Sequence record: OR805293.1
Length of the DNA: 64,000 bases
Direction: 5' to 3' (one strand)
The translations under genes were made by a program, and so were the position numbers. Position 1 is the first letter of the stretch. Each line of letters starts with the position of its first letter. A model generated the notes under the pieces. It did no database searches and was not told the origin of the DNA. It worked only from the letters and a program-made list of their open reading frames with translations. Positions 11,601-59,083 of this stretch are shown here, one piece after another.

Positions 11601-12327
11601 CACCGGAACTATATCTAAATTCACTACAGTATTTAAAAATACAAACATGTATGTAGCTGGCGGATATTCGTTAGGTTTCATAGATAACATAGCGTTAGTA
11701 GACGATACTGGATTAGGAACTGCACTTACTGTAGGAAGAACATATACCACAGGTATATATGATGGACCTGCGTATGTTGGTTTAGGTGCAAACTTTGCAG
11801 TATATGGATACGAAACTGCAATACAATCTATACCGGGTTCCAGTGTAGTATTGGCAGGAAATCTATGCAGGCAAGCAGGCGCTGCAATCCGTGCAGACGG
11901 TTCTATATTGTCATTTAATGCCGGACAATCTGTTTATATTGCAAACCAAGCACAAGATGGTATTGTGTTAAAACACGGAAGTAAACTAATACACAACGAC
12001 GATGCTAGTCAATCGTTTGTATTTGTGATATTCAATAATATCAAATCCGGCACAATCCTGTCGTTAGATACAAGTATATCTACTGCTAATTTTGAAGTTA
12101 AAAACTCAGAAGGCATAATGATAGCTGCAACCAGACATAGTACAGTTGATGCTAGATCAGCTATTGTATCTGGAACAATAACAGGCGATTTAGAAGTAAA
12201 TGCAACAGGCATGTCTATAATCAGCATAAACGAACCTGCAGGCAGTACAAATATACCATTAGCAGTTGTTTGTAATCCTGTTTATGGATCTAATACAGAA
12301 TTACAAAAAGGTTATATAGGATTATAA
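5617..12327 (+). CDS. Giant repeat-rich tail fibre / virion fibre protein (2236 aa)
   Basis: About 20 VAxSGxYxDLxNKP repeats, NGFLRWN and LxDV..G.VL.WNG..W repeats, two T4 gp34-like DTxxxxxTxTLP domains (~10470-11100), C-terminal DGNDxxGxGxxxxPFAT beta-helix-like region. Confidence 0.8.
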   Translation: MSIQSGPSVLNQFVPDFLIDSTPTNGQFLVYDETVQAFVNSTNPRIVLDSSNILDGSITIDKLAISGNKVPGYVLTITSAGGMAFLPVPGSGGQLPSLDELLDTNIVSPTVTQYLKWDGSAWVNSNITLNDVSDVSVISPTADDVLAWESGSWTNKKIDYTSLTNKPDLSDVVRSSELSPVAFSGDYNDLVNIPSATSNTIVGLTDVNDTALPNGFLRWNASGDEVEFITSISATVITGLAPVATSGNYNDLLGKPNLSVYPLRTEFSTVATTGNYSDLNNVPLTFAPSAHTHPAAQITGLASVATSNDYNDLVNKPTAMAPTAHTHAISDIIGLQNSLDSKLTVNLTTRLPKDVIYFNGTSWVNKQLSYTDISGTPNLDNYVTDSELSTVATTGRYSDLINKPELVENLNDLLDVDVSSKQTGNVLTWNGTAWVASAITQASIDWANISNKPSVFNPAAHTHDVVDVLGLQSLLDSKLDANIAFDGDYNSLTNKPGLIDLQDTFSPAVPNGFLRWNNLGTLVAYQDYIYPQDISGLSDVAISGQYSDLLGTPSLSTVAITGSYSDLIDAPPAFDGDYDSLTNKPFIPTNFDFKFIGLNDVSPTVQPGGYLKWNLDGSFVVSSANIPATDVAGLSVVSTTGQYSDLLGKPLLATVSSSGSYTDLINIPTEFNPAVHTHNIADISGLQAALDNKLNTSDAFSGDYNDLTNAPTNSSYSLVGLSDTNSVPVANGFLRWNASGSSVEYIQTIPVNAITGLAPVASSGQYADLQGTPDLSDYVLSVSLADIATTGEYSDLINAPDLSVYANKTDLSDVATTGQYSDLLGIPTQFTPTVHVHNVSQISGLATVATSGSYNDLSNKPSFANVATTGSYDDLNNKPSIPTNGSFSLLGLNDTNNTPVADGILRWNSSANQVIYANTIDAQSVSGLATVATIGKLSSLSDVDLIGLNQNEILQWNGSAWVPVPYNPNQIQAYIESGNTKVSTNDILDSIVLTAGPTTGNIIFELGNTNSSIILNPVANNVDALISSTSRIKLDSSTGISLGNISYPMTDGTVGQAVVTNGAGQLSFETVVKPSQLATVATSGNYNDLTNKPTLVTELNGLADVRMRDTNGNYLAQPEDVLTYSNGIWQARPNTSSSFIGLSDTQNITLPEDRANAYLRWDTTGNLIIYEDSISASVIAGLAEVATTGDLHDLINVNVNLPDMNNPATQAVWGLIWDRQNQRWINYNLRNIAGSGGSTVVALNDLTDVTLTFPVVDGNVLRATVQPDNSIVWQNKQLSYSDLTGTISMSLLQLTDTSSSAVPNGFLRWDSSGNTVQYITTISTNDITGLAPVATSGNYNDLSNTPAIPASINDLADVNTVSPVPTNGYVLTWDSSSNNWIAKEPATNPSGSTALADLTDVSLSDLAASDVLKYNGTTWVNEPVTYSELTDLPTFALVAFSGDYNDLTNKPSGSTTSILDLTDTADTALPNGFLRWNASGDEVLYQSSINVSDIIGLSGVAISGDYNDLSNKPENNSYYFRKLADAGNPQPNTFIKYPAFTIPPGSDIDDVNPILEYVSSINALTDIDNLAPVATNGILGSLVDVNLNSVEDGQVLTYDAVTNSWINKNSSGSPVVTSWTKINGNYTVTGSEYLLVDTTSASVTITLPVAPTENMVIRIADWKGTFRTNSCVVNTNGMPLMGASMDNTLTIQNQNASIELTFVDTTYGWKITDGIGEISKQNIPVTNWRTVDSSSTPAMLIAQPGEAIYVNTNNGAVTVKLPTGASVNAVVRIADLLGTYDKASCFVDGNGNPIMGKNEILEIANENASIEFTYVDSVVGWKVTDGIGELGRKTDIASDSDIIVYVATDGNDTTGSGTEESPFATLNAAFLSLDGKFVNSSAEIIVRVAEGVYEPTNPVAFSHIQGMNVKLIGELPQASSSFTVTNITNDAGLAKVTMQLSSVSDYEVGDIIKITSAATMLECVEIITAINTGSNTLEIVIPNSVLADVSDYTGYTGTISKFTTVFKNTNMYVAGGYSLGFIDNIALVDDTGLGTALTVGRTYTTGIYDGPAYVGLGANFAVYGYETAIQSIPGSSVVLAGNLCRQAGAAIRADGSILSFNAGQSVYIANQAQDGIVLKHGSKLIHNDDASQSFVFVIFNNIKSGTILSLDTSISTANFEVKNSEGIMIAATRHSTVDARSAIVSGTITGDLEVNATGMSIISINEPAGSTNIPLAVVCNPVYGSNTELQKGYIGL
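6244..6293 (+). repeat. 50-bp exact direct repeat, copy 1 (copy 2 at 10015-10064)
   Basis: actgcactacctaacggattcttgcgctggaacgcaagcggtgatgaggt is identical at both sites. Confidence 0.9.
6325..6373 (+). repeat. 49-bp exact direct repeat, copy 1 (copy 2 at 9595-9643)
   Basis: ataaccgggttagctccggttgctactagtggaaattataatgacttat is identical at both sites. Confidence 0.9.
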
Positions 12328-12328
12328 T

Positions 12329-12715
12329 ATGTCTAATTTAAATGATTATTTTGGTGGAACATCTAATAGCACTGGAAGTTATCCCAGTGCTATTCCTGCA
12401 AAAAGAATTAATACTTCTGCAACTACTATTACATCGGGTGAAACTAGAGACTTTATTTTAGGAGTATCATCAGGTGCTGTGTTATTCCTTGCTGTCTCTA
12501 CAATAATAGGTAACCAAACAGACACGTACGAACTTTATATAAAAATAGGATCTAATATAGTAATAGATTTCGAAACAATAACTGGTAATTTTAATACAAA
12601 TCAACCTGCATTTTTATTAGGTTCAGGTACAGCAACCCTTACAGTACATAATACATCTGCAACAGATATGATGTTTAGTTCAAACACATATTTTGCACCA
12701 ATATCTCTTAGTTAA
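12329..12715 (+). CDS. Small tail-associated protein (MSNLNDYFG N-terminus)
   Basis: 128 aa, starts 1 bp after the fibre stop codon; shares its N-terminal peptide with the next gene. Confidence 0.6.
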   Translation: MSNLNDYFGGTSNSTGSYPSAIPAKRINTSATTITSGETRDFILGVSSGAVLFLAVSTIIGNQTDTYELYIKIGSNIVIDFETITGNFNTNQPAFLLGSGTATLTVHNTSATDMMFSSNTYFAPISLS

Positions 12716-12716
12716 T

Positions 12717-12738
12717 AAAAGGGCTTTTAAGCCCTTTT
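12717..12738 (+). terminator. Rho-independent terminator
   Basis: aaaagggct-ttta-agccctttt. Confidence 0.85.
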
Positions 12739-12775
12739 ATTATATTTTACCTATGTTAAAATACTACTAAAATCT

Positions 12776-12783
12776 GGTAAATA
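12776..12783 (+). promoter_or_regulatory. Late promoter motif GGTAAATA
   Basis: Between the terminator and ORF 12831. Confidence 0.5.
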
Positions 12784-12830
12784 TTGTGATAACAATATAA
12801 TAGATTTTAGCTAAGTGTAAAAGGAAACAT

Positions 12831-15800
12831 ATGTCTAATTTAAATGATTTTTTTGGATCAAGTGGATCAGAAGGCGGGGGAGCCGAAGTTAAAAGACTAG
12901 ACGACTTAGTAGACGTTTCTGTAGCTAGTCCAACTAACGGTCAAACCCTTGTTTTTGACAACACAGGCTGGGTAAACAGAAAACTTAGCTACAATGATTT
13001 ATCTAATCTTCCGTCTATATCAAACACATTAAGTGGATTAGATGATGTAGACACTGCCGGTACTATAGCCGGATATGTATTACAATTTAACGGAATAAAA
13101 TGGGTAGGTATGCCTGCCAGTAGTTCCATTTCGTTAGACGATTTATCTAATGTTGCTATTACAGCACCCTCAATAAACCAAACACTGCTATTTAATGGAT
13201 CAACATGGTATAACGGATCTGTAGATTTTAATAATTTAATAAACACACCCGTTATTCCTACACAGTTAGGCGATTTGTCAGATGTTTCTGTCAGTGCTTC
13301 TACTCAAGAAGGAAGTGTACTAGTTTTTAGAACAGGACAATGGATCGGTTCTGTAATAAATTACAACGATTTGTCAAATACTCCTACGATACCGCAAAAC
13401 GATTCATTTACATTCTTAGGTTTATCCGATACTAACGATATACCGGAAGCAAATGGGTTTTTAAAATGGAACAATTTAAGTACAGAAATAGAATATGTTA
13501 CTTCAATTCCTTCGTCTGCTATAACAGGATTAGCCAATGTTGCAACAACCGGTTTATTATCCAGTTTAGTAGATGTGAATGTCAGTGGTGTATCTAATGG
13601 CCAGGTTCTAACATATAATTCCTCTTCTAGCACATGGGTTCCTACTACGCCATCAACCGGCGGCGGAACAAGTGATCCTACTGCTATTTTTAGTACAGAC
13701 GGTAATACGTATATTAATACTGAAGAATTAGTAGACGAGCTAGTTTTAAAAACCGGACCTGGATCCGGAAATATAAATGTCATTCTTGGTGGCAGCGGCA
13801 AGATTGTCGTCGAAGGTCAATCTCCGGAAATAATATCGGAAACTAGTTTAAAATTAACAGGTAGCAATTTATATTTAAATGAACTATCTTGGCCTACGAC
13901 TGACGGAACGAGTGGTCAAGTTTTAGCTACAGACGGAAATGGAAATCTCTCATTTATAACAGTATCGTCCGGTGGAACTACTATACTCATAAACTGGCGC
14001 GGTGAATGGGAAGAAACTAGTTATAATATAAACGACGCAGTAAGTTATGCCGGTTCTAGTTATATATGTGTTGCTGAAGTAGCCGGCGGCGATATTTCTG
14101 TTCCGCCTAGCAATACAAACTTAAATTGGAATATACTAGCACTAAAAGGTGAAGACGGATCATTCTTTACTTATACGGGAACTTATGATTCTAATACTGA
14201 ATATGTAGATAAAGATGTAGTTTATTATAACGGTTCATCTTATGTAGTGTTAGACGGGCAAGGACCTATTACAGGAATCACCCCCACTGACCAATCTAAA
14301 TGGGGTATATTAGCGTTAGCTGGTTCTGGAGGAACAGGCAGTGGTTTTACTTACAAAAATGAATATAATAATTCGGAAACTTATCAAGACCAAGACGTTG
14401 TTAGTTATGGAGGATCTTCATACATTGTTAGTCCTGGCAACGGTCCTGTTACTGGTATTTTGCCTACCGATTCTTCTATTTGGGGTATTATTGCACTCAA
14501 GGGTCAAGACGGGTCTGGAACAGGTAACCAGTCGCTTGAAGATTTAACTGATGTATCTAGTGCCACTCCTACTTCGGGGAATGTGTTAGTAGCTACCGGG
14601 TCATCGTGGTCTTCTTCTAAGTTATCATATAGTCAACTCCAAGGTCTACCTACTTTATCTGTAGTTGCTACTTCTGGTAGTTATAATGACTTATTAGATA
14701 AACCTTCTAATATAGGAACATTTATTGGATTATCAGATACTGATACTCCTTCCCTACCGAATGGATTTTTAAAATGGAATGCACAAGGAACATCTATATC
14801 TTATGTACAATCAATACCTTCAGAATCTATTTCTGGTTTGGCTACTGTTGCTACTACCGGTGATTATAGCGATTTAACTAATACACCTAACATACCAGTT
14901 ATGCTAGACGACTTGACAGATGTGAATTTAGTTACGCCTCCTGTAACAGGACAGGCTTTAGTATACAACGGTACGTATTGGTTGGCAGGCAATGCCGGAA
15001 GCGGTTCGAGCACACTAGCATCATTAACTGACGTTAACTTAACTACTCCTACCAACAATCAAGTATTATCGTATGACAATACACAAAATTTGTGGATTAA
15101 TACACAAATCGATTATGATGATATTTTAAATACACCTAGTATACCCGTAAATAATAGCTTTAGCTTGGTTGGGTTGAACGACACGGATAATTCTGCTATT
15201 CCGAACGCATTCTTAAAATGGAACTCAACTGGGAATTCAGTAGAATACGTTCAGTCTATTTCTGCTAGTAGTATAACAGGATTATCTACTGTTGCTACAA
15301 CTGGAGACTACAACGACTTAACTAATTTACCTTCTATTCCAGAAAATATAAGTGATTTAAATGACGTAGATACATCTACTGCACCTACTGATGGTCAAAT
15401 ACTCATATATAGTGCAGCACTAGGAAAGTGGATTCCTGGAGATCAAAGCGGTACTAGTCCAGTTCCAGGCGGCTTCCCCGGTGAATGGTTAAAAATCAAT
15501 TATACCCCTGGCAATTTAATAGGTACAATTGAGTGTTCGCCTAACATATCATACACTATAGTAGATAATGTTGCAAATAATAATCTTACTTTAGATTTAG
15601 TATTTGCAAATAGACCATACCCGCCTGCTGGATGGATGTGGTATGGTTACTTAGTAACACAAGGCAGATATGTATTAAAAATGCAAGATACTACTAGTCA
15701 TCCGCATACGTTAGAGCTTACGACTACTGAAAATCCGTTTGGAACAGGAACTGGAAAATTATCAGGATTCCAGTGCAGGGTATCAACTACTGGAGCCCAA

Positions 15801-18567: not shown

Positions 18568-21252
18568 ATGGCTATTAAAAATTTTAGCATAAGTGGCATC
18601 GGACGCGATGTCCAGCTAGGCAAAAAAGGCGGCCGCCTCTCTTTTACAAGCGGTGTATTTGCATTCACTAGCGACCTGGGCGGTACTAACTATGCACCCG
18701 TTATAGGCGGAACACCCCTACAACCAGAACATTTAGCAACTAAAGCATATGTAGATTCTATAAGCGGCGGAATAAAACCACTCCAAAGTGTTTCAGTTTC
18801 TACACAACAGTCATATACTGTAGATGGTAATAATACTAATCCGGGAACAGGTGCAACTTGGGCTGCCGGTGTATTTAGTGATTTCCCCAGAACAGTAGAC
18901 GGCCATACACTGGAAATGGGAAGTCGTGTTTTAGTTAGACTAGAAGGTATAACTATAACAGGTGACACACCTACTGTCAACGATACCGGCGCAGCTAGAA
19001 ATGGTATTTATATTGTTACTAACGTAGACACGGAAAACAATACAGTTACATTAGACAGGGCACCAGATTCGGACGAAGATAATGAGTTTATATTTGGCTC
19101 ATATGTTCTTGTAGAAAACGGTACTTCTGCAGGTGACGGTTATACTTTAACTGCACAATACGGTGGTTCAGAAGTTACTCCTCCTAACCAGATGAACGTT
19201 GATCCGCAATTCTGGGTAAAATACACTTCTGCAGGTGCAACATATACTGCCGGCGCCGGCCTAGCGTTGTCGGATAACGAATTTTCGTTAAGTATTCCTA
19301 CTTTATCGGATTTTACAGGCACTGCTGCTGATACATTATCTCTAGCAGTATCTAACGGTACAACTAATAATAAATTAACAGTAAATAAATTATTTACTGA
19401 TTTAGGAGTTGTTACTGCGTTAGGACAAACCGATGGTGTTATAGTAAAATCTGGTTCTAGCTATGTAAGCAGAACTATAGTTGCAGATACTACTGGCAAT
19501 AAACTAGGTATTGCTGTATCTAATACAGACGGTTCTGCAGGAAATATAACAGTAGGGTTAGATGTAAATGGATTGACTGCCGTTTCCTCTGCACTAAACG
19601 ATACTGATGTCCTCCCAATATACGATGGAACTAGTAACAAAAAGGTTTCTATAAGCCAATTAGCTGCCGAATTTACATCTGGTTTTTCTTCTAATAGTAT
19701 TTCTCAATTAGACAGTTCTGTTGTAGTAACAGACACAGGATCTAACGGTACAATTACCTTTACTGCTGATAATACTGCTGTTGCTACTATTACTTCTGCA
19801 GGTCTTACTTCGTCTAATTTAACTGCAAGTAACTTAACTAGCGGAAGAATAGTACTGGCAGGAACTTCCGGTCATTTAGAAGATAACTCTGCTCTTACTT
19901 TTTCTGCAGGTATACTGAATGTAGGATCACTGACTGTAGATAGTGCTACTAGTACAATTTCTACAACAGAAACAAACGGAAACATAATTATTGCGCCAAA
20001 CGGTACAGGCGAAGTAGTAATACAAGGCAATGGTAATGCAGAAATAAGTGCAGAACTAGGTGAACAACTAAGTCTACGCGGTGACGGTGTTATTATAGGA
20101 AACACTGCAAACACAGTAGACTATATTACTGCAACAGAAACTAATACTATATTCTATTCTACATTAGCAAATAATATAGCTATTGCCGGTGCTGCTGCGA
20201 GTTCAAACCCGTCTATTACTGCATTAGGTTCAGATACAAACTTAGGCCTAAACTTAGGAGTAAAAGGCACAGGAAAAATTGTTGTTACCGGCGTAACAGC
20301 ATCTGCATATTCTTCTGACTTAACTGACGCATCGTTAGTTAACAAACTATATGTAGATACTGCTGTTTCGGGTGCTTCTGGCAATATAACAGCACTACAA
20401 ACAGAAGTAAATGCCATAGAGACATCTGTAGGATTAAACACTGACGGAACTCTTTCTGCATATACCGGAACAAACTATTTAGACTCTGCAACTAGTATAA
20501 AACAGGCTACTACTTTACTTGACGCACAAGTAAAAACTAATGCAGACGATATATTAGATAAAGCAGATCAAACAGAAGTAGATGCCATAGAGACTGCTGT
20601 TGGCTTAGGAACAGATGGTACACTAGCACCTTATACTGGAACAAATTATTTAAATTCTGCAACTAGTATAAAACAAGCAACTATTTTGCTAGATACACAA
20701 ATAAAGACCAACGAAGACGACATAGCACTAAAAGCCAACCAAACAGAAGTAGATGCTATAGAAACAGGCGCTGGACTCAATACAGACGGTACTTATACTG
20801 CTGATGCAACTACTAACTATATAACTACTGCTACAAGTTTAGCTAATGCAGACAAGTTATTAGATGCACAGATTAAAATTAATACCGATGCTATTGCACA
20901 ACTGGGTTCTGCTGCAGGTTCAGTTCGTACTGTAAAATTAGAAAATATTCCGTTTGATACCGATAGTTCGACTCCCATAATAGAAGGAACTGATCTGCCT
21001 GCAAACGGCATTACTATCAATAGTATAATATTTAAAGTAAATACCGCTGCTGATACTGCTGCATGGGCTACCGTAACTCATAATTCGGTTACACTAGCAT
21101 CAGATACAACTAATGATCCGGAAGTAGTAGGATTGTATCAAGTCGATGTGTTCTCTGATTCAGTCGCTGGACAAGATATAACACTAACTATAGCTGCACA
21201 TGGTGCAAGTACAGGTACTGTTACTGTATTACTCCAATATACAATTCTATAA
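18568..21252 (+). CDS. Putative virion fibre/structural protein (894 aa)
   Basis: QLGKKGG N-domain, HLATKAYVD motif, three QTEVxAIETxxGLxTDGT repeats, T/S/A/G-rich. Confidence 0.65.
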   Translation: MAIKNFSISGIGRDVQLGKKGGRLSFTSGVFAFTSDLGGTNYAPVIGGTPLQPEHLATKAYVDSISGGIKPLQSVSVSTQQSYTVDGNNTNPGTGATWAAGVFSDFPRTVDGHTLEMGSRVLVRLEGITITGDTPTVNDTGAARNGIYIVTNVDTENNTVTLDRAPDSDEDNEFIFGSYVLVENGTSAGDGYTLTAQYGGSEVTPPNQMNVDPQFWVKYTSAGATYTAGAGLALSDNEFSLSIPTLSDFTGTAADTLSLAVSNGTTNNKLTVNKLFTDLGVVTALGQTDGVIVKSGSSYVSRTIVADTTGNKLGIAVSNTDGSAGNITVGLDVNGLTAVSSALNDTDVLPIYDGTSNKKVSISQLAAEFTSGFSSNSISQLDSSVVVTDTGSNGTITFTADNTAVATITSAGLTSSNLTASNLTSGRIVLAGTSGHLEDNSALTFSAGILNVGSLTVDSATSTISTTETNGNIIIAPNGTGEVVIQGNGNAEISAELGEQLSLRGDGVIIGNTANTVDYITATETNTIFYSTLANNIAIAGAAASSNPSITALGSDTNLGLNLGVKGTGKIVVTGVTASAYSSDLTDASLVNKLYVDTAVSGASGNITALQTEVNAIETSVGLNTDGTLSAYTGTNYLDSATSIKQATTLLDAQVKTNADDILDKADQTEVDAIETAVGLGTDGTLAPYTGTNYLNSATSIKQATILLDTQIKTNEDDIALKANQTEVDAIETGAGLNTDGTYTADATTNYITTATSLANADKLLDAQIKINTDAIAQLGSAAGSVRTVKLENIPFDTDSSTPIIEGTDLPANGITINSIIFKVNTAADTAAWATVTHNSVTLASDTTNDPEVVGLYQVDVFSDSVAGQDITLTIAAHGASTGTVTVLLQYTIL

Positions 21253-28215: not shown

Positions 28216-29890
28216 AGAATATTATCAGTCATACGCAAAAGAATTAAAAAAGAATAATAAGAAAGAATACAATCGTATTCTTTCTTTGTATGAGCCCGTA
28301 TTTGATAAATGGGTTGCATTCAAGTATTATATAGAAGGAATATCGCCGCCTGTATGTAAAGAATGTGGTAATAGAATAACTGTTTCGGCAAAACAAGCAG
28401 AATATCACACAGAATGCAAATATAATAAACACAAGTATTCATTTGATAAATTTATAAAATGCATAGATGATGACCAATACATATATTGTGTGTGGAATGG
28501 ATATATTCCGACATCTGACAATATAACATACAGATGCACTAAACACGGCATAATTGTTCAAAAACTTAGTTCTAGACTAAAAGGTCACAAATGCCAAAAA
28601 TGTTCAGCTGAGCGTAAAGTAAGTCTAGATAACTTTAATAACTGGAAAACGCAGTGTTCTAAAATACATAATAATTTTTATGATTATTCTGTATCTACTG
28701 ATTTTACATTCTTAACAAAAGATGTATCTATTAAATGTCCAATACATGGAATATTTAAACAAAAAGCAAACGTCCATCAATCAGGTCACGGTTGTAAAAA
28801 ATGCTCGTTCGAAGCTATCGGTCATAAATTATCATATGACACCGATTCTTTTATAGAAAGAAGTAATAACGTTCATAATAATTTTTATGACTATACCAAA
28901 ACTATATACACTAACATTAGAGATAAAGTTGTTATAACATGTCCGATACACGGCGACTTTAACCAGATAGCATATTATCATACTGCCGGGCACGGTTGTC
29001 AGAAATGCGGTTTAGATAAAGTAGCAGAAACTACATATAGATCTAAGGCAGAAATAGAAATATTCGATTTAGTTAAATCTTATTGCTCAGATACAATTCA
29101 TTCATACAATAAATTTGGGTTCGAATTAGACATATATGTTCCTAGTAAAAATCTTGCAATAGAATATAATGGACTTTATTGGCATTCTTCTAAACACATA
29201 GAAACTGATCAAAAATATAAAACATACCATCTTGATAAAACCACTACATGTGAACAAAATAATATCCAATTATTACACATTTTCGACAACGAATGGCATA
29301 CTAAAAAAGATATATGGATCTCGGTAATAAAAAATAAACTAGGTTTATCTAATAAAATATATGCAAGAAAAACAGAAATTAAAGAAGTTAAGTTCGATGA
29401 TGCAAAGCAATTCGCCGAAACGAATCATTTGCAAGGTCATGCACAATTTCGGCATGCATACGGATTGTATTATTCGGATCAATTAGTTTCTTTATTAACA
29501 ATTGCAAAGCCCAGGTTTAATAAAAATGCAAACTGGGAAATAGTAAGATTTTGTAACCTAAATAACACAAGTGTAATAGGTGGGTTTTCTAAATTATTAA
29601 AGGTAGTTTCTTGTAATTTTACAGGCAAGATAGTATCATATGCAAATAGGCGCTGGTCCGTAGGAAACGTTTATGAAAAAAACGGATTTGCTAAAACTTC
29701 AATAATAGCTCCTGGATTTTATTATACTGACTTCAAAGATACATATAATAGGTTATCTTTCTCTAAAGACAAGGCAAAAGTTAAATTAAAAAATTATAAT
29801 AATTCAGTTAGCGTAGTAGAAAATATTTACGCAAACGGATATGGCAGGATTTGGGATTCAGGAAATATTGTTTATACAAAGGATTTATAA
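28208..29890 (+). CDS. Free-standing homing endonuclease (Zn-finger repeats, Vsr/EDxHD-like nuclease, Mom/GNAT-like C-terminal domain)
   Basis: CxxHG...H..GHGCxxC repeats; ELDIY...AIEYNGLYWHS; WEIVRF...IVSYANRRWS.G.VY..NGF; sits between the intein halves. Confidence 0.8.
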   Translation: MNKEYYQSYAKELKKNNKKEYNRILSLYEPVFDKWVAFKYYIEGISPPVCKECGNRITVSAKQAEYHTECKYNKHKYSFDKFIKCIDDDQYIYCVWNGYIPTSDNITYRCTKHGIIVQKLSSRLKGHKCQKCSAERKVSLDNFNNWKTQCSKIHNNFYDYSVSTDFTFLTKDVSIKCPIHGIFKQKANVHQSGHGCKKCSFEAIGHKLSYDTDSFIERSNNVHNNFYDYTKTIYTNIRDKVVITCPIHGDFNQIAYYHTAGHGCQKCGLDKVAETTYRSKAEIEIFDLVKSYCSDTIHSYNKFGFELDIYVPSKNLAIEYNGLYWHSSKHIETDQKYKTYHLDKTTTCEQNNIQLLHIFDNEWHTKKDIWISVIKNKLGLSNKIYARKTEIKEVKFDDAKQFAETNHLQGHAQFRHAYGLYYSDQLVSLLTIAKPRFNKNANWEIVRFCNLNNTSVIGGFSKLLKVVSCNFTGKIVSYANRRWSVGNVYEKNGFAKTSIIAPGFYYTDFKDTYNRLSFSKDKAKVKLKNYNNSVSVVENIYANGYGRIWDSGNIVYTKDL

Positions 29891-45736: not shown

Positions 45737-47232
45737 TGGATAATTTTGATATAGAATTAAAAGAACTCATAAAAAATACAAATCCTAACGCATTAGGAAA
45801 TGTAGTAAAAAGTAAAAAAGAAATATATGAGGAATTAGTTCGACGAACTAATTCCTTTCTTCGTGACGACGTTTCTGTAACAGAAAGGATTCATATATAC
45901 TTAAATCCGGATGATAATGTTTACTGTAAGTATGATAACAAACGGACACTAAAGCGAAATAAAGATACAAAACAAACCCAATACGGATTTTGCGGAAATA
46001 AAAGTAAATGTAAATGTCATATGGAATGGTCTTTAAAAAATCATCCAGGCATGACAAAATCCGGAAAAGAAAGTATGAAAACAAAGAGGATAAAAACCTG
46101 GATAGAAAAATACGGTGTCGATAATCCATCTAAGTCAAAAGATATTATTGCAAAACAGCAATTAAGTAAAAAACATATAAAGCCAGATCATAGAACTATA
46201 AAGGAACTGGGATATAAAAAAGTAGTAGAACGGCTTTCTAACATACTCACCCCTACGTTTAGTATAGACGAGTACGAAGGGTGCTTTAGAAAAAATGTGT
46301 ATGACTGGGTATGCAATGCATGCGGAAATATAGTTATCGGACACGTAGATTATGGGTCTACTCCGAGGTGCAATGTTTGTAATCCTATAACAAAGTCTGC
46401 CGGCGAGAATGAAATATCTAACTATATAGTATCGCTAGGATTTGATGTGATTAACAATGACCGAACTATATTATCTAACAAAGAATTAGATATAGTAATT
46501 AAAGGTACAAACATAGCAATAGAATATAATGGTTGTTATTGGCATTCTACAAAACACAGAAAAAAATCATATCATGTAGATAAATTTATAGAATGCAGAG
46601 ATAAAGGAATAAAGTTAATACAAATTTTAGATGTAGATTGGATATCAAAACAAGACATAATAAAATCAAGGTTAAAATCTATTTTAGGTTGTAGTGATAG
46701 AATATATGCAAGGAATACAACTATAAAAGAAATAACATTTAACGAATCTTTAACTTTTTTAGAAGAAACTCACATCCAAGGTTCTTGTCAATCATCTGTA
46801 AGACTAGGTCTATACGACAATGAGAATTTGTTAGTAGCCGTAATGACATTTGGGAAATCTAGATATACAAAAGAGGAATATGAATTACTTAGATATGCTA
46901 GCAAAAATACTGTTGTAGGAGGAGCCAGCAAACTTCTTAAATATTTCATAAAAACATATTCCCCTAAATCTATTATTACATATGCAGATAGGTGTTGGTC
47001 AGATGGAAATTTATATAAACAACTCGGGTTTACAAATGTAACTAAGAATGACAGAAATACAGGATATTGGTATATAAAAGACAACATAAAATATCATAGA
47101 TCTAATTTCATAAAATCTAAGATTTCTAATAAAAATAATTTACATCTAAGCGAATCGGAAATAATGGATAGTTTAGGTTATTTAAAATATTACGATTGCG
47201 GCAATTACAAATATACATTGCAGGTACGCTAG
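45724..47232 (+). CDS. Second free-standing Vsr/EDxHD-like homing endonuclease with Mom/GNAT-like C-domain
   Basis: CxxC..CxxC Zn ribbon, ELDI...AIEYNGCYWHS, IYAR.T.IKE, YELLRY...ITYADR.WS.G.LY..LGF; clear paralogue of 28208-29890. Confidence 0.8.
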   Translation: MARIMDNFDIELKELIKNTNPNALGNVVKSKKEIYEELVRRTNSFLRDDVSVTERIHIYLNPDDNVYCKYDNKRTLKRNKDTKQTQYGFCGNKSKCKCHMEWSLKNHPGMTKSGKESMKTKRIKTWIEKYGVDNPSKSKDIIAKQQLSKKHIKPDHRTIKELGYKKVVERLSNILTPTFSIDEYEGCFRKNVYDWVCNACGNIVIGHVDYGSTPRCNVCNPITKSAGENEISNYIVSLGFDVINNDRTILSNKELDIVIKGTNIAIEYNGCYWHSTKHRKKSYHVDKFIECRDKGIKLIQILDVDWISKQDIIKSRLKSILGCSDRIYARNTTIKEITFNESLTFLEETHIQGSCQSSVRLGLYDNENLLVAVMTFGKSRYTKEEYELLRYASKNTVVGGASKLLKYFIKTYSPKSIITYADRCWSDGNLYKQLGFTNVTKNDRNTGYWYIKDNIKYHRSNFIKSKISNKNNLHLSESEIMDSLGYLKYYDCGNYKYTLQVR

Positions 47233-52565: not shown

Positions 52566-53312
52566 TTACTTACCTTTTCTTACCAAAATTGACATACAAT
52601 GTGCTAATTCGTCATAGTAATTTGGAAATAATTGCTTTACTTTTTTATGAAAACTCATAGGCATTGTTTTATTTTTATCTGCTATATAGTAATATTCGGG
52701 ATCAACTTTCATTAATCTAATAGCATCAGTGCCAGTTAATTGCATTTTATTTAATAATGTTTCAGTTTCCCTAGATTTAGGCAATTTATTATTACATATT
52801 TCAGAAATTACAAGGCAAGGTTTAATGTTATCTATATTGTTATTTGCTATAAATTCGATAAATTTTGTTCTAAACGAAATTTTAAATAAATGCTCAGGAA
52901 TAGGTGTATTATATACTATTGAGTTTAAATCTAAATCTGTTAATATTTTTGCCATACGTTTTATACCGTCTTTAGAATTATAATAAATTACACGATAGTA
53001 TGGAGTATTATGCCAGACTTGCATATACTTCATTAACACTTTAGGATGAATACTAACAATAGTTTTTAACCGCTCGGTTGGAATAACATCGCCGAATGTG
53101 TGTATGTGTCTAGCAACAAACTTGTCTGACATTTTAGAAACTAATCTAGTTTTTGCTGCTGTAGATGCATCTACAGCAGCATGATACAGTAACTCGTCGT
53201 CATTAGAATAATTATTCTCTATTAGTTTTATGATGTTATGTTTTTTGCAATTGTACGTATTTAATAAGATTTCTTTCAAATCTTCTCTTTCTATATAAAT
53301 TTTGTCATTCAT
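52566..53312 (-). CDS. AT-rich helical hypothetical protein (family member 3)
   Basis: 248 aa; ends ...KQLFPNY....SILVRKGK. Confidence 0.65.
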   Translation of the reverse strand: MNDKIYIEREDLKEILLNTYNCKKHNIIKLIENNYSNDDELLYHAAVDASTAAKTRLVSKMSDKFVARHIHTFGDVIPTERLKTIVSIHPKVLMKYMQVWHNTPYYRVIYYNSKDGIKRMAKILTDLDLNSIVYNTPIPEHLFKISFRTKFIEFIANNNIDNIKPCLVISEICNNKLPKSRETETLLNKMQLTGTDAIRLMKVDPEYYYIADKNKTMPMSFHKKVKQLFPNYYDELAHCMSILVRKGK

Positions 53313-54264
53313 TTGTTTTTCTTTTTCCTTTGCCTGTAGATAAAATATACATAAAATATTCTTCGTTATTTTTTAATTCAGGATACATCTTAAACATTTC
53401 TGACCAACTAGTTTTTGTTAATTTTTCGAGATGCTTAGGTACTATAGGCTTAAAGGTTGTTGTATATTTCTTAGCAAATGCCACTAAGTTAGCACCTGTA
53501 AACGGAGTGCCGTGTACAAATTCTTTAGAAGAAAGTTCATCCGATATATCGTTTTCGTTAATTTCAAAAAAGTTAACAATATTGTATACATCAGATTTAG
53601 AAATGTACCTATTTTTTATTATATCGTTTTTTATTGTATCTAAAGTAAATATTTGCTTAAGATCGTTTACTGTATCTAAAGCATATTTAGGACACAATTT
53701 ATTAGACTTATTAAAGTCAGATACTGTATGTTTAATTGCTGGCGGCAAATGGTAATAATACGAAAATGAATTATAAGTAAATACGAGATTTGCCATACTA
53801 CACAGACGTTTAATATGTTTATCTATTACATTGGCATATAATTTATCATAATTTTTATATGTTTTTAAATTATGTAAATCAGACATATGTATTTTATTTA
53901 AACACAGCATCAATGGAATACAGTCACTGTACCTAGCTGCCACATTATTTACAATAGGTTTACTGTTGAATTTAGATTTAAACTCATTAATTATTTTTTC
54001 ATTAAACAAAATAGTAATGTCTTTTATAAGAAATTCATGCAATGCTCTGCATAACCCATCAAACTGTGTACTATTCTTAAATGCATAAAGACTAGTAGAT
54101 AAATTATCATTGTTAAAAAACGATGATAATGCATAGTGTGCATCTGATGAATGTTCTAACGGTATGTCATATCTAATAGAACTTTCTAATATATATTCTA
54201 TATCGTTTCGTTCTACCGAATTCCAGTCAATTTGTGATAACATGTGTGATACTGATTTTTTCAT
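53305..54264 (-). CDS. AT-rich helical hypothetical protein (family member 2)
   Basis: 319 aa; ends W.EMFKMYPEL...YILSTGKGK. Confidence 0.65.
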   Translation of the reverse strand: MKKSVSHMLSQIDWNSVERNDIEYILESSIRYDIPLEHSSDAHYALSSFFNNDNLSTSLYAFKNSTQFDGLCRALHEFLIKDITILFNEKIINEFKSKFNSKPIVNNVAARYSDCIPLMLCLNKIHMSDLHNLKTYKNYDKLYANVIDKHIKRLCSMANLVFTYNSFSYYYHLPPAIKHTVSDFNKSNKLCPKYALDTVNDLKQIFTLDTIKNDIIKNRYISKSDVYNIVNFFEINENDISDELSSKEFVHGTPFTGANLVAFAKKYTTTFKPIVPKHLEKLTKTSWSEMFKMYPELKNNEEYFMYILSTGKGKRKTNE

Positions 54265-55157
54265 TAGTTTCGGGGACCTTTAAGTTTTGCTAGTACATGT
54301 TGTTCTGACCCAGCCAAATGAGGGAAGATCTTTATAAGTTTGTTCCAGTACGAATACGGCAAAAAATCGAGATTTATATAATCTAAATATTTTATAGAAT
54401 TACTATGCAACCTATTCCTCGAAAGTATAGTCAATATATGTCGTCCTGCTATATAAGACCAATCTATATTTTTAAGAAATGTAATACAACTGTCAGTAGA
54501 CATTGTCTGACCATTTGCTTTATGCATATAGAATAGCGAAGACATCCTTTCAAAAAGAAACCAGTGATATTGTTTATTTTTAGAAATAGTATCAAACCCT
54601 ACAAATTTTACATATTCTTCAAAAACAGAATATCTTTTACTACAAAAAAAATTAAATACTCTTTTATTCAACAAAACGTTATGTCGTTTTAATTCTTTTA
54701 AAATAAGTCTTACTATGTTTAAATCAGGTAAAGATTGTATGGTACACAATTGCGTTATTATATCTTTAGATAATGCTTTTCTCGGTTTTAAATTCTTTAA
54801 AACAACATAAAATAATTTATGACATGTTATAGGAACTTTCATAGGAAACATTGAATTTGAAAATTTTCCAATACATTGCCTGACAAGATATAAATCTTCT
54901 TTACTTATAGATCTGTTATATTCACTAATAGAAGATGAATAATTACTTGATATAAAGTTTATTAATTTTGGACTTTTAATTTCCATAAGAACATTCAATA
55001 CAGTAGCATTGAACGGTATATATTCAACGTCAATAGAATTACAGACTGCAATTAGTGCATCTTTAGCTGAATTATTAGCAATTGTTATTTCTTTATTTTT
55101 TCTAAATTTAATAAAATATTCTAATTCGCCTAAAGCTTTAATATAGCTAATATCCAT
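54264..55157 (-). CDS. AT-rich helical hypothetical protein (family member 1)
   Basis: 297 aa; ends W.KLIKIFPHL...VLAKLKG. Confidence 0.65.
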   Translation of the reverse strand: MDISYIKALGELEYFIKFRKNKEITIANNSAKDALIAVCNSIDVEYIPFNATVLNVLMEIKSPKLINFISSNYSSSISEYNRSISKEDLYLVRQCIGKFSNSMFPMKVPITCHKLFYVVLKNLKPRKALSKDIITQLCTIQSLPDLNIVRLILKELKRHNVLLNKRVFNFFCSKRYSVFEEYVKFVGFDTISKNKQYHWFLFERMSSLFYMHKANGQTMSTDSCITFLKNIDWSYIAGRHILTILSRNRLHSNSIKYLDYINLDFLPYSYWNKLIKIFPHLAGSEQHVLAKLKGPRN

Positions 55158-55183
55158 ACGTATACCGTAAAAATTTTTACCAT

Positions 55184-55212
55184 ACTATAAAATATGTATA
55201 TTCAATAGTCAA
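55184..55212 (-). promoter_or_regulatory. sigma70-type promoter (leftward)
   Basis: TTGACT-17bp-TATAGT on the minus strand. Confidence 0.75.
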
Positions 55213-55246
55213 CTGTGTTTGGTAACAAAATGTGGTAATTAGGCAC

Positions 55247-55275
55247 TTGACATTGGTATTGTCTTTTAGTAAACT
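55247..55275 (+). promoter_or_regulatory. sigma70-type promoter (rightward) with no downstream ORF
   Basis: TTGACA-17bp-TAAACT. Confidence 0.75.
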
Positions 55276-55281
55276 GTGCGC

Positions 55282-55900
55282 TTGCGTAAGAAATGTATAT
55301 ACGATAGTGCTATATGTATATACAGACAAGTGGCTCTGTTCCATTATTGGATATTGGTAGTAGAAACTATCCCCATCGTGCTGTTAATGTAGTTCCGATA
55401 GTGTCGGGTTAACGTTTTAACAGTTATTTAAATTATGATTTTGGGTGCCACAGAGATTGTACTTACTAAAAGGACTTAGTAAGAACCGCATATAATCTCG
55501 AAACTTGTGTAGGATGTTGGTCTAACCACGGCATAGAATATATGCCTCAACTACTACACGGAAAGGATGATGCTCTGGTTGAAACAGAGTTTCTATAAAT
55601 CTTTCAGTATAGATTCCGCATGACTGAAAGTTGAAACACCAACATCAATAGACTATAGTTTTTGTTAGTGTGGCTATAGTTTATTCCGGCATTGAAAGTA
55701 TATACAGTGATGCGAGACAGTAAGCATTAGTAGCAACTGTATATATGAGTAAGAGGATGCGTTTACAATGAGGAATTACCTATCGGTGCCCGCCTCAGGG
55801 ATTGCACTTCCCAACGTACACTAAACTTCGTACCATACCGAAACATACGTTTCTGTTATTACGATTTCCTTCCCAAACGGGGAGGAAATCTTCTCCGCCC
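55282..55900 (+). ncRNA. Candidate large structured non-coding RNA (~620 nt)
   Basis: No ORF of 60 aa or more, raised GC, at least 9 stems with G-U wobbles, dedicated promoter; family not identified. Confidence 0.6.
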
Positions 55901-56122
55901 GAATATCATAAGATCAAAAGCATTAATAATTAATATATAAAATTCGTTTAATTAGTTATTAAGTATATGAGTTGTAGTTTACGAAAACGAATATACTTAA
56001 TAACTACCAGTGAAGCTTGCTTCGCTGTTTAAAATTGCAATTTGTATTTTCAATTTTATATTTTGAAATGTGTTTTTGAAAATCAATCTATAAAATATAA
56101 TTTTAAATATTATTTTTAAATG

Positions 56123-56209
56123 TCATTTTGTGATTTTAATTTAAAATACTATTTCATGATTTAAAATAGAAATATATTAAACAATATCATTTTGTGATTT
56201 TAATTTAAA
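56123..56209 (+). repeat. 23-bp direct repeat x2 in a very AT-rich tract (56123-56145, 56187-56209)
   Basis: tcattttgtgattttaatttaaa, 64-bp period. Confidence 0.85.
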
Positions 56210-56260
56210 CAATTTCATATAAAACTATTTTGTCTATTTCTTTTATAATCTTAAAGTCAT

Positions 56261-56288
56261 TAAAAACCCTACATTTGTAGGGTTTTTA
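56261..56288. terminator. Bidirectional intrinsic terminator
   Basis: taaaaaccctac-attt-gtagggttttta. Confidence 0.85.
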
Positions 56289-56976
56289 TTTGATTATATG
56301 GTATTCGGTTCTAGATATTCAGATTATAATTAATAACATCTGTATGATAACTATATTTTACAGAAATACATTTACTAATTACATTTGTCAATAAATGGTT
56401 ATTTTTCTTTATATATTTAATACGTCTCAGAGGTATATAGCAAATATGATAAATCGAGGCACATAATATTTGTGTCTATATTTTTTAGTTTTATTAATCT
56501 ACATAATTGATTATTAATGTATACAGTTGTATACGCTATATTGTAATAACAAACCAAATTATATAGAGAATATACATTAAACTCTGTTTTGTGTTGAATC
56601 AACACTACATATATTATTTATTATTATGTATTAATACCTGCTGTATATAAAACTAATTAGTTATTATGTGCTTTAGAAGAATTCCATTATAATTAGTTTT
56701 CTGTGTCATACTCAAATGATGAAAGAATTATATTCTTTCATCTGTTTTATTATATGTTATTCAAGATTTATAATATAATTTTATAATGTTTGCAATTTAT
56801 GACACAAGCTATTTTAATAGAATTATACTATTCAAAGTTTTGACTTATTTTATGTGTAAAACGACAAAAATAGGCATATTTATAAAAAGCACACCTGTTT
56901 TCTGTATGAAACAAAATAGTATTTTATTAAAAATAGTGTATAGTAATAAAAACATCATTAATCATGCACGTAATTT

Positions 56977-57198
56977 ATGGTAAACGTAATTAAAGAACTT
57001 CATCCTATTAAAGGATATTGCATAGTTGTGCGTCATCCAGGCGATACTAGATTTAGCTGGGTATCGCTAGATAATCAATATATTTTGGTAGACAATCCAG
57101 TATTTTTAAATGATGAATTTGACAATTGTAAAAACGAATGGCCAGATGCTGAAATAAAAATAGTAGAAGTGTATGTTGTCCCGGAGAAGGTGTTATGA
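56977..57198 (+). CDS. Small hypothetical protein (tandem paralogue A)
   Basis: Aligns end to end with 57195-57413. Confidence 0.7.
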   Translation: MVNVIKELHPIKGYCIVVRHPGDTRFSWVSLDNQYILVDNPVFLNDEFDNCKNEWPDAEIKIVEVYVVPEKVL

Positions 57199-57922: not shown

Positions 57923-59083
57923 ATGAGTCAGATGTACGTAACTATCACTAACGGAATGTACCGTAACCAGCAAGTAAACGGCACATTCCTTTTACTTGAA
58001 GATGTGAAAGTTACTGGGTCGGGAAAACGAGTTATTAACGTATTAGGCGCATTGCCAGAATGGTCTCAACATAAATGTAGAGTTACACTCGGCAATGACG
58101 CAACAGTACAATATTCGAACGAACAAGGAGAGGTTTTAGATTTGCCTAATGTTATACGTCCGTTTGTGGGCGAAAATAATAATAATAATAATGTTCCTGC
58201 ATCTAGTCGCGGTACAGTGTATGAAGGCACCGCAGTAGAAATTGACTACGAAAAGCAATACCAACAGCTAGAATCCGAAAACGATGCAATGAATCGTATC
58301 AAACGGACTTTTGAGATTGTAAATGAACTAACAGAGGCTGCCGCGGCAGGCGAAATCCGTTCTATGATCATCTCTGGTCCTCCCGGAATCGGAAAAAGCT
58401 TCGGTGTAGAAGAAACACTAAACAGGTGTTTCTTGTTAGATAAAATTAAAGATAATAAAGAACCGTTTGAGATCGTGAAGGGCGCTGCAAGTGCAATTGG
58501 TGTTTACCAAAAGCTTTACGAATTTAAAGATAAAGGTAAAATCCTTATTTTCGATGATTGCGACCGCGTACTATTTGACGAAGATAGTCTAAATCTCCTT
58601 AAAGGTGCATTAGATACTACTAAGCGTAGAACTATTTACTGGCTTAGTGAGTCCCGCGTTTTAAAAGAAAATGATATTCCACCTAAATTCGATTTCGAAG
58701 GTAGTGTAATTTTCCTTACTAACCTTAACTTCGAGGATACAAAGTCCCGAATTGGAAGGCACCTAGAAGCAATTATGTCCCGGTGTCATTATTTAGACAT
58801 GGAAATTAGTAGTACGAGAGACCAGATCCTTCGTATTAAACAAGTTGTGCGCGACGGGATGCTTAGTAAATATGAATTTAATAACGGAGAAGATGAAGAA
58901 ATCCTAGAATATATTATCGATAATCAGAATGATCTGCGAGAACTTAGCTTGCGTATGGTAATTAAAATTGCCGATCTGATTAAATTCAAAAAAGATGGTT
59001 GGCGAGAATATGCAGAGACAACTGTACTGAAACGGAATGCAAAATTCCGGCGGCTGTATAACGAAAAGTACAGTGATATTTAA
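57923..59083 (+). CDS. AAA-type P-loop ATPase of T4-like/jumbo phages
   Basis: Walker A GPPGIGKS, Walker B LIFDDCD, IFLTN, SRC arginine finger; AGGAG RBS. Confidence 0.85.
   Translation: MSQMYVTITNGMYRNQQVNGTFLLLEDVKVTGSGKRVINVLGALPEWSQHKCRVTLGNDATVQYSNEQGEVLDLPNVIRPFVGENNNNNNVPASSRGTVYEGTAVEIDYEKQYQQLESENDAMNRIKRTFEIVNELTEAAAAGEIRSMIISGPPGIGKSFGVEETLNRCFLLDKIKDNKEPFEIVKGAASAIGVYQKLYEFKDKGKILIFDDCDRVLFDEDSLNLLKGALDTTKRRTIYWLSESRVLKENDIPPKFDFEGSVIFLTNLNFEDTKSRIGRHLEAIMSRCHYLDMEISSTRDQILRIKQVVRDGMLSKYEFNNGEDEEILEYIIDNQNDLRELSLRMVIKIADLIKFKKDGWREYAETTVLKRNAKFRRLYNEKYSDI

Follow-up and report, generated by a model that had tools for sequence, protein, structure and literature searches.

Bacteriophages are known to carry large structured RNAs such as ROOL and GOLLD, which are 500-800 nt long, free of open reading frames (ORFs), built of many helices, and of unknown function. 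Similar in outline are the untranslated, structured transcripts of ~550-600 nt that start at a sigma-70 (or middle) promoter and face an A+T-rich region, with ColE1 RNA II and the T4 oriF/oriG R-loop transcripts as the precedents for RNAs that prime replication at an origin, as well as the untranslated RNAs RsmY, RsmZ, and CsrB, which expose A(N)GGA motifs in hairpin loops. Here, we describe a locus that shares traits with each of these systems. It lies on the + strand at positions 55294-55912 of a 64,000-nt stretch of sequence record OR805293.1 (hereafter, the window), where an earlier note, made from the letters of the sequence, had proposed a promoter-driven, hairpin-dense, large non-coding RNA (ncRNA). 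Our analysis confirms that the locus is a real RNA gene that is folded, non-coding, read from the + strand, and equipped with its own promoter. We interpret it as the gene for a stand-alone structured ncRNA of ~620-630 nt, one of three paralogues, that would act in trans as a scaffold or decoy, a reading to which we assign a probability of roughly 0.55.

The window derives from a PA5oct-type Pseudomonas jumbo phage (genus Wroclawvirus, family Arenbergviridae), and, judged by sequence match, the locus is the orthologue of a PA5oct feature that has been described before. Over 626/626 nt, it is 99.2% identical to MK797984 246112-246737, on the same strand and with collinear flanking genes. At 246116-246734 (+), which corresponds to window 55294-55912, the PA5oct record holds a "putative lncRNA" named ncRNA004 (EST35_0353), a label that came from strand-specific RNA sequencing (RNA-seq). 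The two are the same gene, with no difference at the locus, and the transcript is already known, having been annotated in 2019-2020. The PA5oct paper reported four ORF-free regions with active transcription, for which no function was proposed (Lood et al. 2020; PMC7318152), and the share of ncRNA004 among the phage reads in host PAO1 was 0.08% early (5 min), 0.03% in the middle (15 min), and 0.02% late (25 min) (PMC7318152). The later papers that we consulted add nothing to this account. A discrete + strand transcript is hence on record for the large ncRNA that the earlier note had put forward. The published annotation comprises a transcribed ORF-free region only, without promoter, structure, paralogues, or conserved core; the present analysis adds a three-copy family, a covariation-supported core and 5′ half, the promoters, and population evidence for selection at the RNA level.

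When positions 55150-56000 were compared with 50,697 phage records by blastn, 11 records matched, all of them Wroclawvirus. Deifobo and Paride were 100% identical to the query, and the remaining Wroclawvirus records were 98.8-99.3% identical. Each of these records matched the query at three places. In PA5oct, whose genome we searched by BLAST in pieces with the near-identical window standing in for ~192-250 kb, the three places are the locus itself (copy A; core at window 55326-55454, + strand), which sits between divergent gene blocks; copy B (core at MK797984 ~12,893-13,029, which is 5894-6030 of the B locus, L002), within a 900-nt unannotated gap of the terminal repeat; and copy C (core at MK797984 ~75,982-76,117, which is 1982-2117 of the C locus, L005), beneath tiny "hypothetical protein" calls. 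The whole units span MK797984 ~12,830-13,570 for B (L002 5832-6569) and ~75,798-77,005 for C (L005 1798-3005). PA5oct ncRNA001, ncRNA002, and ncRNA003 are unrelated to this family.

The three copies share a core of ~130 nt, with 79-84% identity among them and with the stretches UGGAUAUUGGUAGUAGAAACUAUCCCCAUCGUGC and GGUUAUUUAAAUUAUGAUUUUGGGUGC invariant. A covariance model of the core (R1) had exactly three matches in the genome, with scores of 143-160 bits. Beyond the core, all copies have in common a second block, AAAGGAUGAWGCUCUGGUWGAAACAGAG (window 55563-55590), and short motifs near the 3′ end, the remainder not being alignable by BLAST or MAFFT. In all three, moreover, the first hairpin after the core exposes an A(A)GGA loop, with an unpaired probability of ~1.0. 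These data show that A, B, and C are ancient paralogues, present at three per genome. In current records, copy B is unannotated in PA5oct and lies under tiny "hypothetical protein" coding sequence (CDS) calls in Deifobo and Ettore, and copy C is overlaid by tiny CDS calls in PA5oct (EST35_0143-0145) and Deifobo; the calls over B and C are probably false CDSs on RNA genes.

Comparison of the copies revealed helices that are kept by compensatory substitutions between homologues, as seen across two to three independent lineages (the paralogues) in alignments that were fitted to the structures of the models. The core (55326-55454, +) is a conserved four-way junction, in which P1 joins 55330-34 to 55447-51, P2 (55340-51) and P3 (55356-71) follow, and a long arm, P4-P6, spans 55372-55445. 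In the RNAalifold consensus, P1 reads GYRGC/GCYRC, P2 and P3 are short invariant hairpins, and the long arm carries an invariant 10-nt bulge, UAUUUAAAUU. Across a core alignment of 21 sequences (15 distinct), 95.6% of the cells at the 39 pairs were paired, compared with 33-50% when the partners were slid. Changes on both sides were found at 8/39 pairs, located in P1, P5, and P6; P2-P4 are invariant and therefore uninformative for covariation.

For window 55453-55640, we built a model from copy A alone (R2), with eight helices specified by hand. This model found copy B full-length at the homologous position (L002 6030-6195, 166 nt) with 39 bits and E ~6e-9; its match to copy C was weak and ran mostly via block 2. 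In the A+B alignment obtained from R2, 98.8% of the cells were paired, against 27-47% in slid controls, and 26/52 pairs had changed on both sides, showing that the stems in 55453-55635 are maintained in B via compensatory changes. One example is the first domain after the core, H1 (55453-55499, +), which consists of an outer 9-bp stem (55453-55461/55491-55499), an inner 8-bp stem (55462-55469/55476-55483), and a 6-nt loop with AAGGAC. Copy B retains the outer stem, the inner 8-bp hairpin, the 6-nt loop, and the 47-nt span, with stem sequences that are almost wholly different: 11/17 pairs have changed on both sides. Ungapped threading of H1 onto B recovers just 11/17 pairs, owing to a 1-nt register shift, and plain MAFFT misaligns the covarying domains. 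Overall, the core is conserved in sequence and structure, whereas the body has diverged in sequence and kept its helices through compensatory changes between A and B.

Variation among isolates, for which we compared nine genomes, provided a further view on selection. Copy A contains 18 variable sites in 634 nt (2.8%), whereas the flanking genes vary at ~4.1% and the A+T-rich spacer at ~13%. When these sites were placed on the minimum free energy (MFE) structure of copy A, 10 of the 12 variable paired sites stayed paired, where a null of 0.55 applies to random transitions (binomial p ~0.04). Nine of these 10 pairing-neutral sites are A/G facing U. Such a change yields a G-U pair in the + strand RNA and a C-A mismatch on the other strand, so the tolerance is specific to the + strand, which bears out the orientation of RNA-level selection proposed earlier. 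The T/C polymorphisms of copy A fall in loops or face G in 4/4 cases. Copy B holds compensatory pairs within the population: at 5955/5998, C-G is replaced by U-A in phage 30-3, and at 6433/6447, C-G is replaced by A-U in Deifobo, Callisto carrying C-U as an intermediate. In copy C, four variable paired sites are retained and 0 are broken. Purifying selection acts on the RNA about as strongly as on the genes that flank it, and the conservation of the RNA is at least equal to theirs.

Upstream of copy A lies a sigma-70-type promoter (55247-55275, +) that points into the tract, as had been noted, with TTGACA (55247-55252), a 17-nt spacer, and TAAACT (55270-55275), matching 10/12 consensus positions. 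The corresponding position in copies B and C is occupied by TTGACA-17-TATAAT (L002 5832-5860; L005 1798-1826). Because promoter-like sites are no rarer than chance in this AT-rich DNA (21 found in the scan versus 17.6 expected), the promoter of copy A is not significant alone, and its support comes from its conservation in the paralogues together with the reliance of PA5oct on the host RNA polymerase, with promoters of the form TTGAC/TATAATA (PMC7318152). The tract is GC-richer than its surroundings (36-44% versus 22-25% upstream and 15-22% downstream) and free of ORFs, both as described before: on the + strand of 55282-55915, there is no ORF longer than 43 aa, and the ORF pieces of the region matched no family in Pfam or PHROG. 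The indels between paralogues have lengths that are not multiples of three, such that any reading frame is broken. Several GenBank records place tiny hypothetical CDSs across the region.

No known RNA family accounts for the locus in the Rfam searches. At the gathering threshold, no family was found in the window or in the B and C loci; at E <= 10, there was no match within 55280-55920, and B and C gave weak chance or terminator-like matches, none of them common to the copies. Membership in ROOL, GOLLD, OLE, raiA, or HEARO was rejected for lack of an Rfam covariance-model match; the earlier note had cited ROOL and GOLLD as phage RNAs of similar size. Identity as a group I/II intron, RNase P, tmRNA, 6S, SRP, RsmY/Z, or CrcZ RNA was likewise rejected, with no match in the Rfam models, and ARAGORN reported 0 tRNA/tmRNA genes in the window, in line with the absence of tRNA, tmRNA, RNase P, and intron signatures remarked on before. 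Scans for exact or degenerate motifs in IMG/VR, JGI metagenomes, and GTDB genomes returned nothing or chance 17-21-mers, all rejected by R1. These scans require exact words, and diverged relatives may therefore have been missed. Synteny offers no anchor either, since the 297-aa upstream neighbour is a genus-restricted orphan ORF.

The predicted fold of copy A is markedly stable, with an MFE of -183.1 kcal/mol on the + strand (z = -5.8 versus shuffles), compared with -156 kcal/mol (z = -3.0) on the - strand. All the stems listed in the earlier note were recovered to within 0-2 nt, the one at 55647-55685 amounting to 14 bp; that inventory stood, but it had missed the most conserved part, the core at 55326-55454. 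The RNA opens, in the predicted fold, with a 5′-terminal hairpin of 9 bp (55294-55324, +; 55294-55302/55316-55324) that is invariant among isolates; copy B likewise opens with a short hairpin, GCUGU-CGUA-ACAGC. Core and H1 are followed by a three-way junction that includes GGCAUA/UAUGCC (55506-55560, +); its outer helices covary with B, which has a simpler hairpin there, and in A, polymorphism 55508 T>G disrupts one pair. Conserved block 2 (55563-55590, +), kept in all three paralogues, consists of AAAGGAUGAUGC and a hairpin, GCUCUG-GUUGAAA-CAGAGU (55572-55577/55585-55590), and its sole polymorphism (55580) falls in the loop. Next comes a hairpin (55591-55643, +) with outer UUC/GAA and inner CUUUCAGU/ACUGAAAG (55601-55608/55623-55630), followed by the conserved single-stranded ACACCAAC. 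Two helices of this hairpin covary with B, ACACCAAC is common to A and B, and polymorphism 55623 A/G retains pairing as G-U.

In the 3′ half, all features again being on the + strand, the 14-bp hairpin (55647-55685; 55647-55660/55672-55685) weakly matches a B hairpin at the same position, and its polymorphisms at 55650 and 55678 are both A>G facing U. A 10-bp stem with an inner 5-bp hairpin (55699-55745), not clearly conserved in B, has polymorphisms at 55704 and 55710 that are also A>G facing U. A branched domain (55758-55818) contains a UGAGG...CCCGCCUCA hairpin (55769-55797), of which UGAGGAA...CCCGCCUC is common to B; pairing is retained at polymorphisms 55797 and 55813. Just before the annotated 3′ end, a G+C-rich 3′ hairpin of 12 bp without a U tract (55863-55890; 55863-55874/55879-55890) reaches -19.8 kcal/mol (z = -3.2), with polymorphism 55875 in the loop.

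A constrained junction with invariant single-stranded residues, surrounded by a covarying periphery, is the pattern of partner-docking RNAs, and we therefore favor a trans-acting scaffold or decoy. The RNA would fold into consecutive hairpin domains, flanked on either side by the 5′ hairpin and the G+C-rich 3′ hairpin, which may protect its ends. Acting in trans, it would serve as a scaffold or decoy for which the invariant core could be the docking site of a common partner, be it another RNA or a protein of phage or host. The three paralogues would then provide the same activity from promoters that differ in timing or placement; copy B, for one, is positioned in the early, highly transcribed terminal repeat (PMC7318152).

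Several observations weigh against this scaffold or decoy reading. Its mechanism is drawn from the anatomy alone, and the abundance of ncRNA004 is low at all three times. The family is narrow, with no homologue beyond Wroclawvirus among the 50,697 phage records searched by blastn. The covariation comes from few lineages and from model-fitted alignments, as stated above, and copy C can hardly be aligned past the core. With a third model, R3 (55641-55830), B was matched at the corresponding position, but weakly (6 bits, E 0.08); one hairpin, UCCGG, and UGAGGAA...CCCGCCUC lined up, and we therefore do not count the 3′-half architecture as conserved.

Past the 3′ end, the flank of the gene holds several further elements. 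A perfect A+T-rich hairpin of 16 bp (55953-56006, +) lies ~40 nt beyond the annotated end and has a counterpart after each of the three units (16-17 bp, without a U tract; L002 6515-6569; L005 2952-3005). The stems differ among the copies, but A and C have one and the same 27-nt loop, GAGUUGUAGUUUACGAAAACGAAUAUA, which is absent from the rest of the genome; for the hairpin, a role as RNA processing site, terminator, or DNA element is possible. A spacer of ~1 kb (55916-56976) with 15-22% GC follows, containing a 27-nt direct repeat at 56119-56145 and 56183-56209, and isolates differ greatly in it, with 15-20 variable columns per 100 nt across 56190-56790. Within it, the first canonical intrinsic terminator downstream of the gene, a bidirectional one (56261-56288), stands between the RNA gene and the rightward operon that starts at 56977. 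Farther on, a 386-aa product (57923-59083), called "thioredoxin" in the PA5oct and PAC2 records, instead matches AAA_16 and PHROG 1250 and weakly resembles clamp loaders and DnaC-like helicase loaders, so "thioredoxin" looks like a misannotation. On the upstream side, three consecutive genes on the - strand (52566-55157; 248, 319, and 297 aa) matched nothing in Pfam or PHROG; of their products, the one of 297 aa is found in Wroclawvirus only, and the 319-aa product was detected as a virion protein by mass spectrometry in PA5oct.

This arrangement of promoter, structured RNA of ~600 nt, and A+T-rich spacer with direct repeats resembles ColE1 RNA II, and the RNA might thus be a replication-origin primer: the transcript would run into the A+T-rich region, form a persistent RNA-DNA hybrid, and be processed (e.g., by RNase H) into a leading-strand primer, with the paralogues marking three origins. 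The large hairpin conserved after each unit, the nearby AAA+ protein with its weak similarity to loaders, and an RNase H-like protein encoded by PA5oct would fit such a role, as would the location of A and C, which coincides exactly with switches of the genes from the minus to the plus strand and with local minima of the cumulative GC skew (PA5oct ~244-246 kb and ~70-75 kb). However, these minima coincide with the strand switches and are wholly accounted for by gene orientation, and they are therefore not independent evidence for an origin; copy B, moreover, is embedded in a block of genes that all run in one direction. No part of the locus is less conserved than the spacer, the annotated transcript stops before it, and the strongest constraint falls on the 5′ core, distant from the putative unwinding region. 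The abundance is low and peaks early rather than at replication, and we consider an origin primer unlikely. Copy A could instead be a long structured leader or cis-regulatory element that controls the rightward operon from 56977 or insulates divergent promoters, given that both A and C are positioned between divergent gene blocks and that the 55863-55890 hairpin is not followed by a U-tract terminator. Yet the strong terminator at 56261-56288 and the ~1 kb of hypervariable spacer precede the first gene, so the RNA is not the leader of the next operon. The RNA-seq coverage gave a discrete feature ending near 55912, the genes after the three paralogues are unrelated, and in B, a TTGACA and a weaker -10-like hexamer just upstream of the downstream gene suggest that this gene has a promoter of its own, leaving a leader role highly improbable.

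The exposed A(N)GGA motifs raise the prospect of a sponge for RsmA/RsmN (CsrA family), which would titrate host Rsm dimers and reprogram post-transcriptional control in the manner of RsmY/RsmZ, with candidate motifs in the H1 loop, at 55509-55517 (GUAGGAUGU), and in block 2 (AAAGGAUGA). Rsm/CsrA proteins have the binding consensus RUACARGGAUGU, obtained by systematic evolution of ligands by exponential enrichment (SELEX), and the B hairpin ACAAGGAUAUGU comes near it. The loop AGGA and AAAGGAUGA, both conserved in all three copies, are compatible with Rsm binding at one or two sites, and A(N)GGA shows a mild excess that is confined to the + strand (p = 0.02 in A, 0.07 in B, and 0.16 in C). Nevertheless, we found 1-3 well-exposed GGA motifs (unpaired probability >0.9) per 600-900 nt, fewer than four and not densely spaced, compared with 4-8 per ~120 nt in RsmY/RsmZ; GGA as such is not enriched (10-13 per copy versus 8-11 expected, p = 0.12-0.22). 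The Rfam searches gave no hit to RsmY, RsmZ, CsrB, or similar families, and a sponge would leave the large invariant four-way junction unexplained, which makes it distinctly unlikely. Self-assembly into a homo-oligomeric, RNA-only particle, as for the "ornate" RNAs ROOL, GOLLD, and OLE, could use the palindromic bulge UAUUUAAAUU as a symmetric contact. A phage-borne, ORF-free RNA of ~600 nt with dense structure does recall ROOL and GOLLD, and an invariant self-complementary UUUAAA sits within the 10-nt core bulge. Unlike those RNAs, the present one exists in three diverged copies per genome, is known from one genus of Pseudomonas phages only, has no Rfam similarity to such families, and lacks adjacent tRNA genes (none in the window; a cluster lies ~21 kb away in PA5oct). 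The palindrome, the one specific point in favor, is A+U-only and could be chance, and the low abundance disfavors stoichiometric assembly, so we regard self-assembly as very unlikely. A last proposal, that there is no function at the RNA level and that the locus is a decayed coding gene, an element that works as DNA (through cruciforms or as a site of packaging or recombination), or transcriptional noise, could appeal to the low read counts and to the tiny hypothetical CDSs that several GenBank records place here. It is largely refuted, with hardly any probability left to it, by the compensatory base-pair changes, found also within populations, by the strand-specific G-U tolerance, by the frame-breaking indels and the ORF pieces without family match, and by a conservation equal to or above that of the neighbouring genes.

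Elsewhere in the window, we noticed further repeats. Positions 6148-15332 hold at least 18 in-frame copies of a 51-nt unit encoding L-A-T-V-A-T-S-G-N-Y-N-D-L-T-N-K-P, at spacings that are multiples of 3, which suggests that very large structural genes here carry a peptide repeat of the tail-fibre type. A 171-nt unit occurs in three tandem copies at 20391-20903 (62-75% identity to the reference copy), and segments at 29123-29386 and 46483-46731 are diverged copies (71-76% identity) that suggest paralogous homing-endonuclease-like genes. A family of terminator-like hairpins, AAAAGGGGCTT...AAGCCCCTTTT, is located at 12712, 44411, 48484, and 49051.

Returning to the trans-acting scaffold or decoy, the transcript itself was published previously and the family is so far confined to one genus, and within these limits the finding corrects the annotation: copies B and C are RNA genes that the Wroclawvirus records we examined leave blank or cover with tiny "hypothetical protein" calls. 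Large structured RNAs without an assigned function are rare and hard to study, and this one resides in a cultivable model jumbo phage (PA5oct, Paride) with PAO1 as host. Its anatomy is testable, with a promoter, defined ends, and a covariation-supported core, and the two paralogues serve as natural sequence variants. More tentatively, and with odds that we place somewhat short of even, the paralogues may represent an unrecognised class of large structured phage RNAs, marked by a core with an invariant four-way junction, a hairpin that presents AGGA, and a body that evolves fast but keeps its structure, that would form a ribonucleoprotein scaffold or decoy for a host factor (Rsm, Hfq, RNase E, or a defence sensor) or would self-assemble. 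If true, this would give a model jumbo phage an RNA-based mode of host interaction of a new kind.

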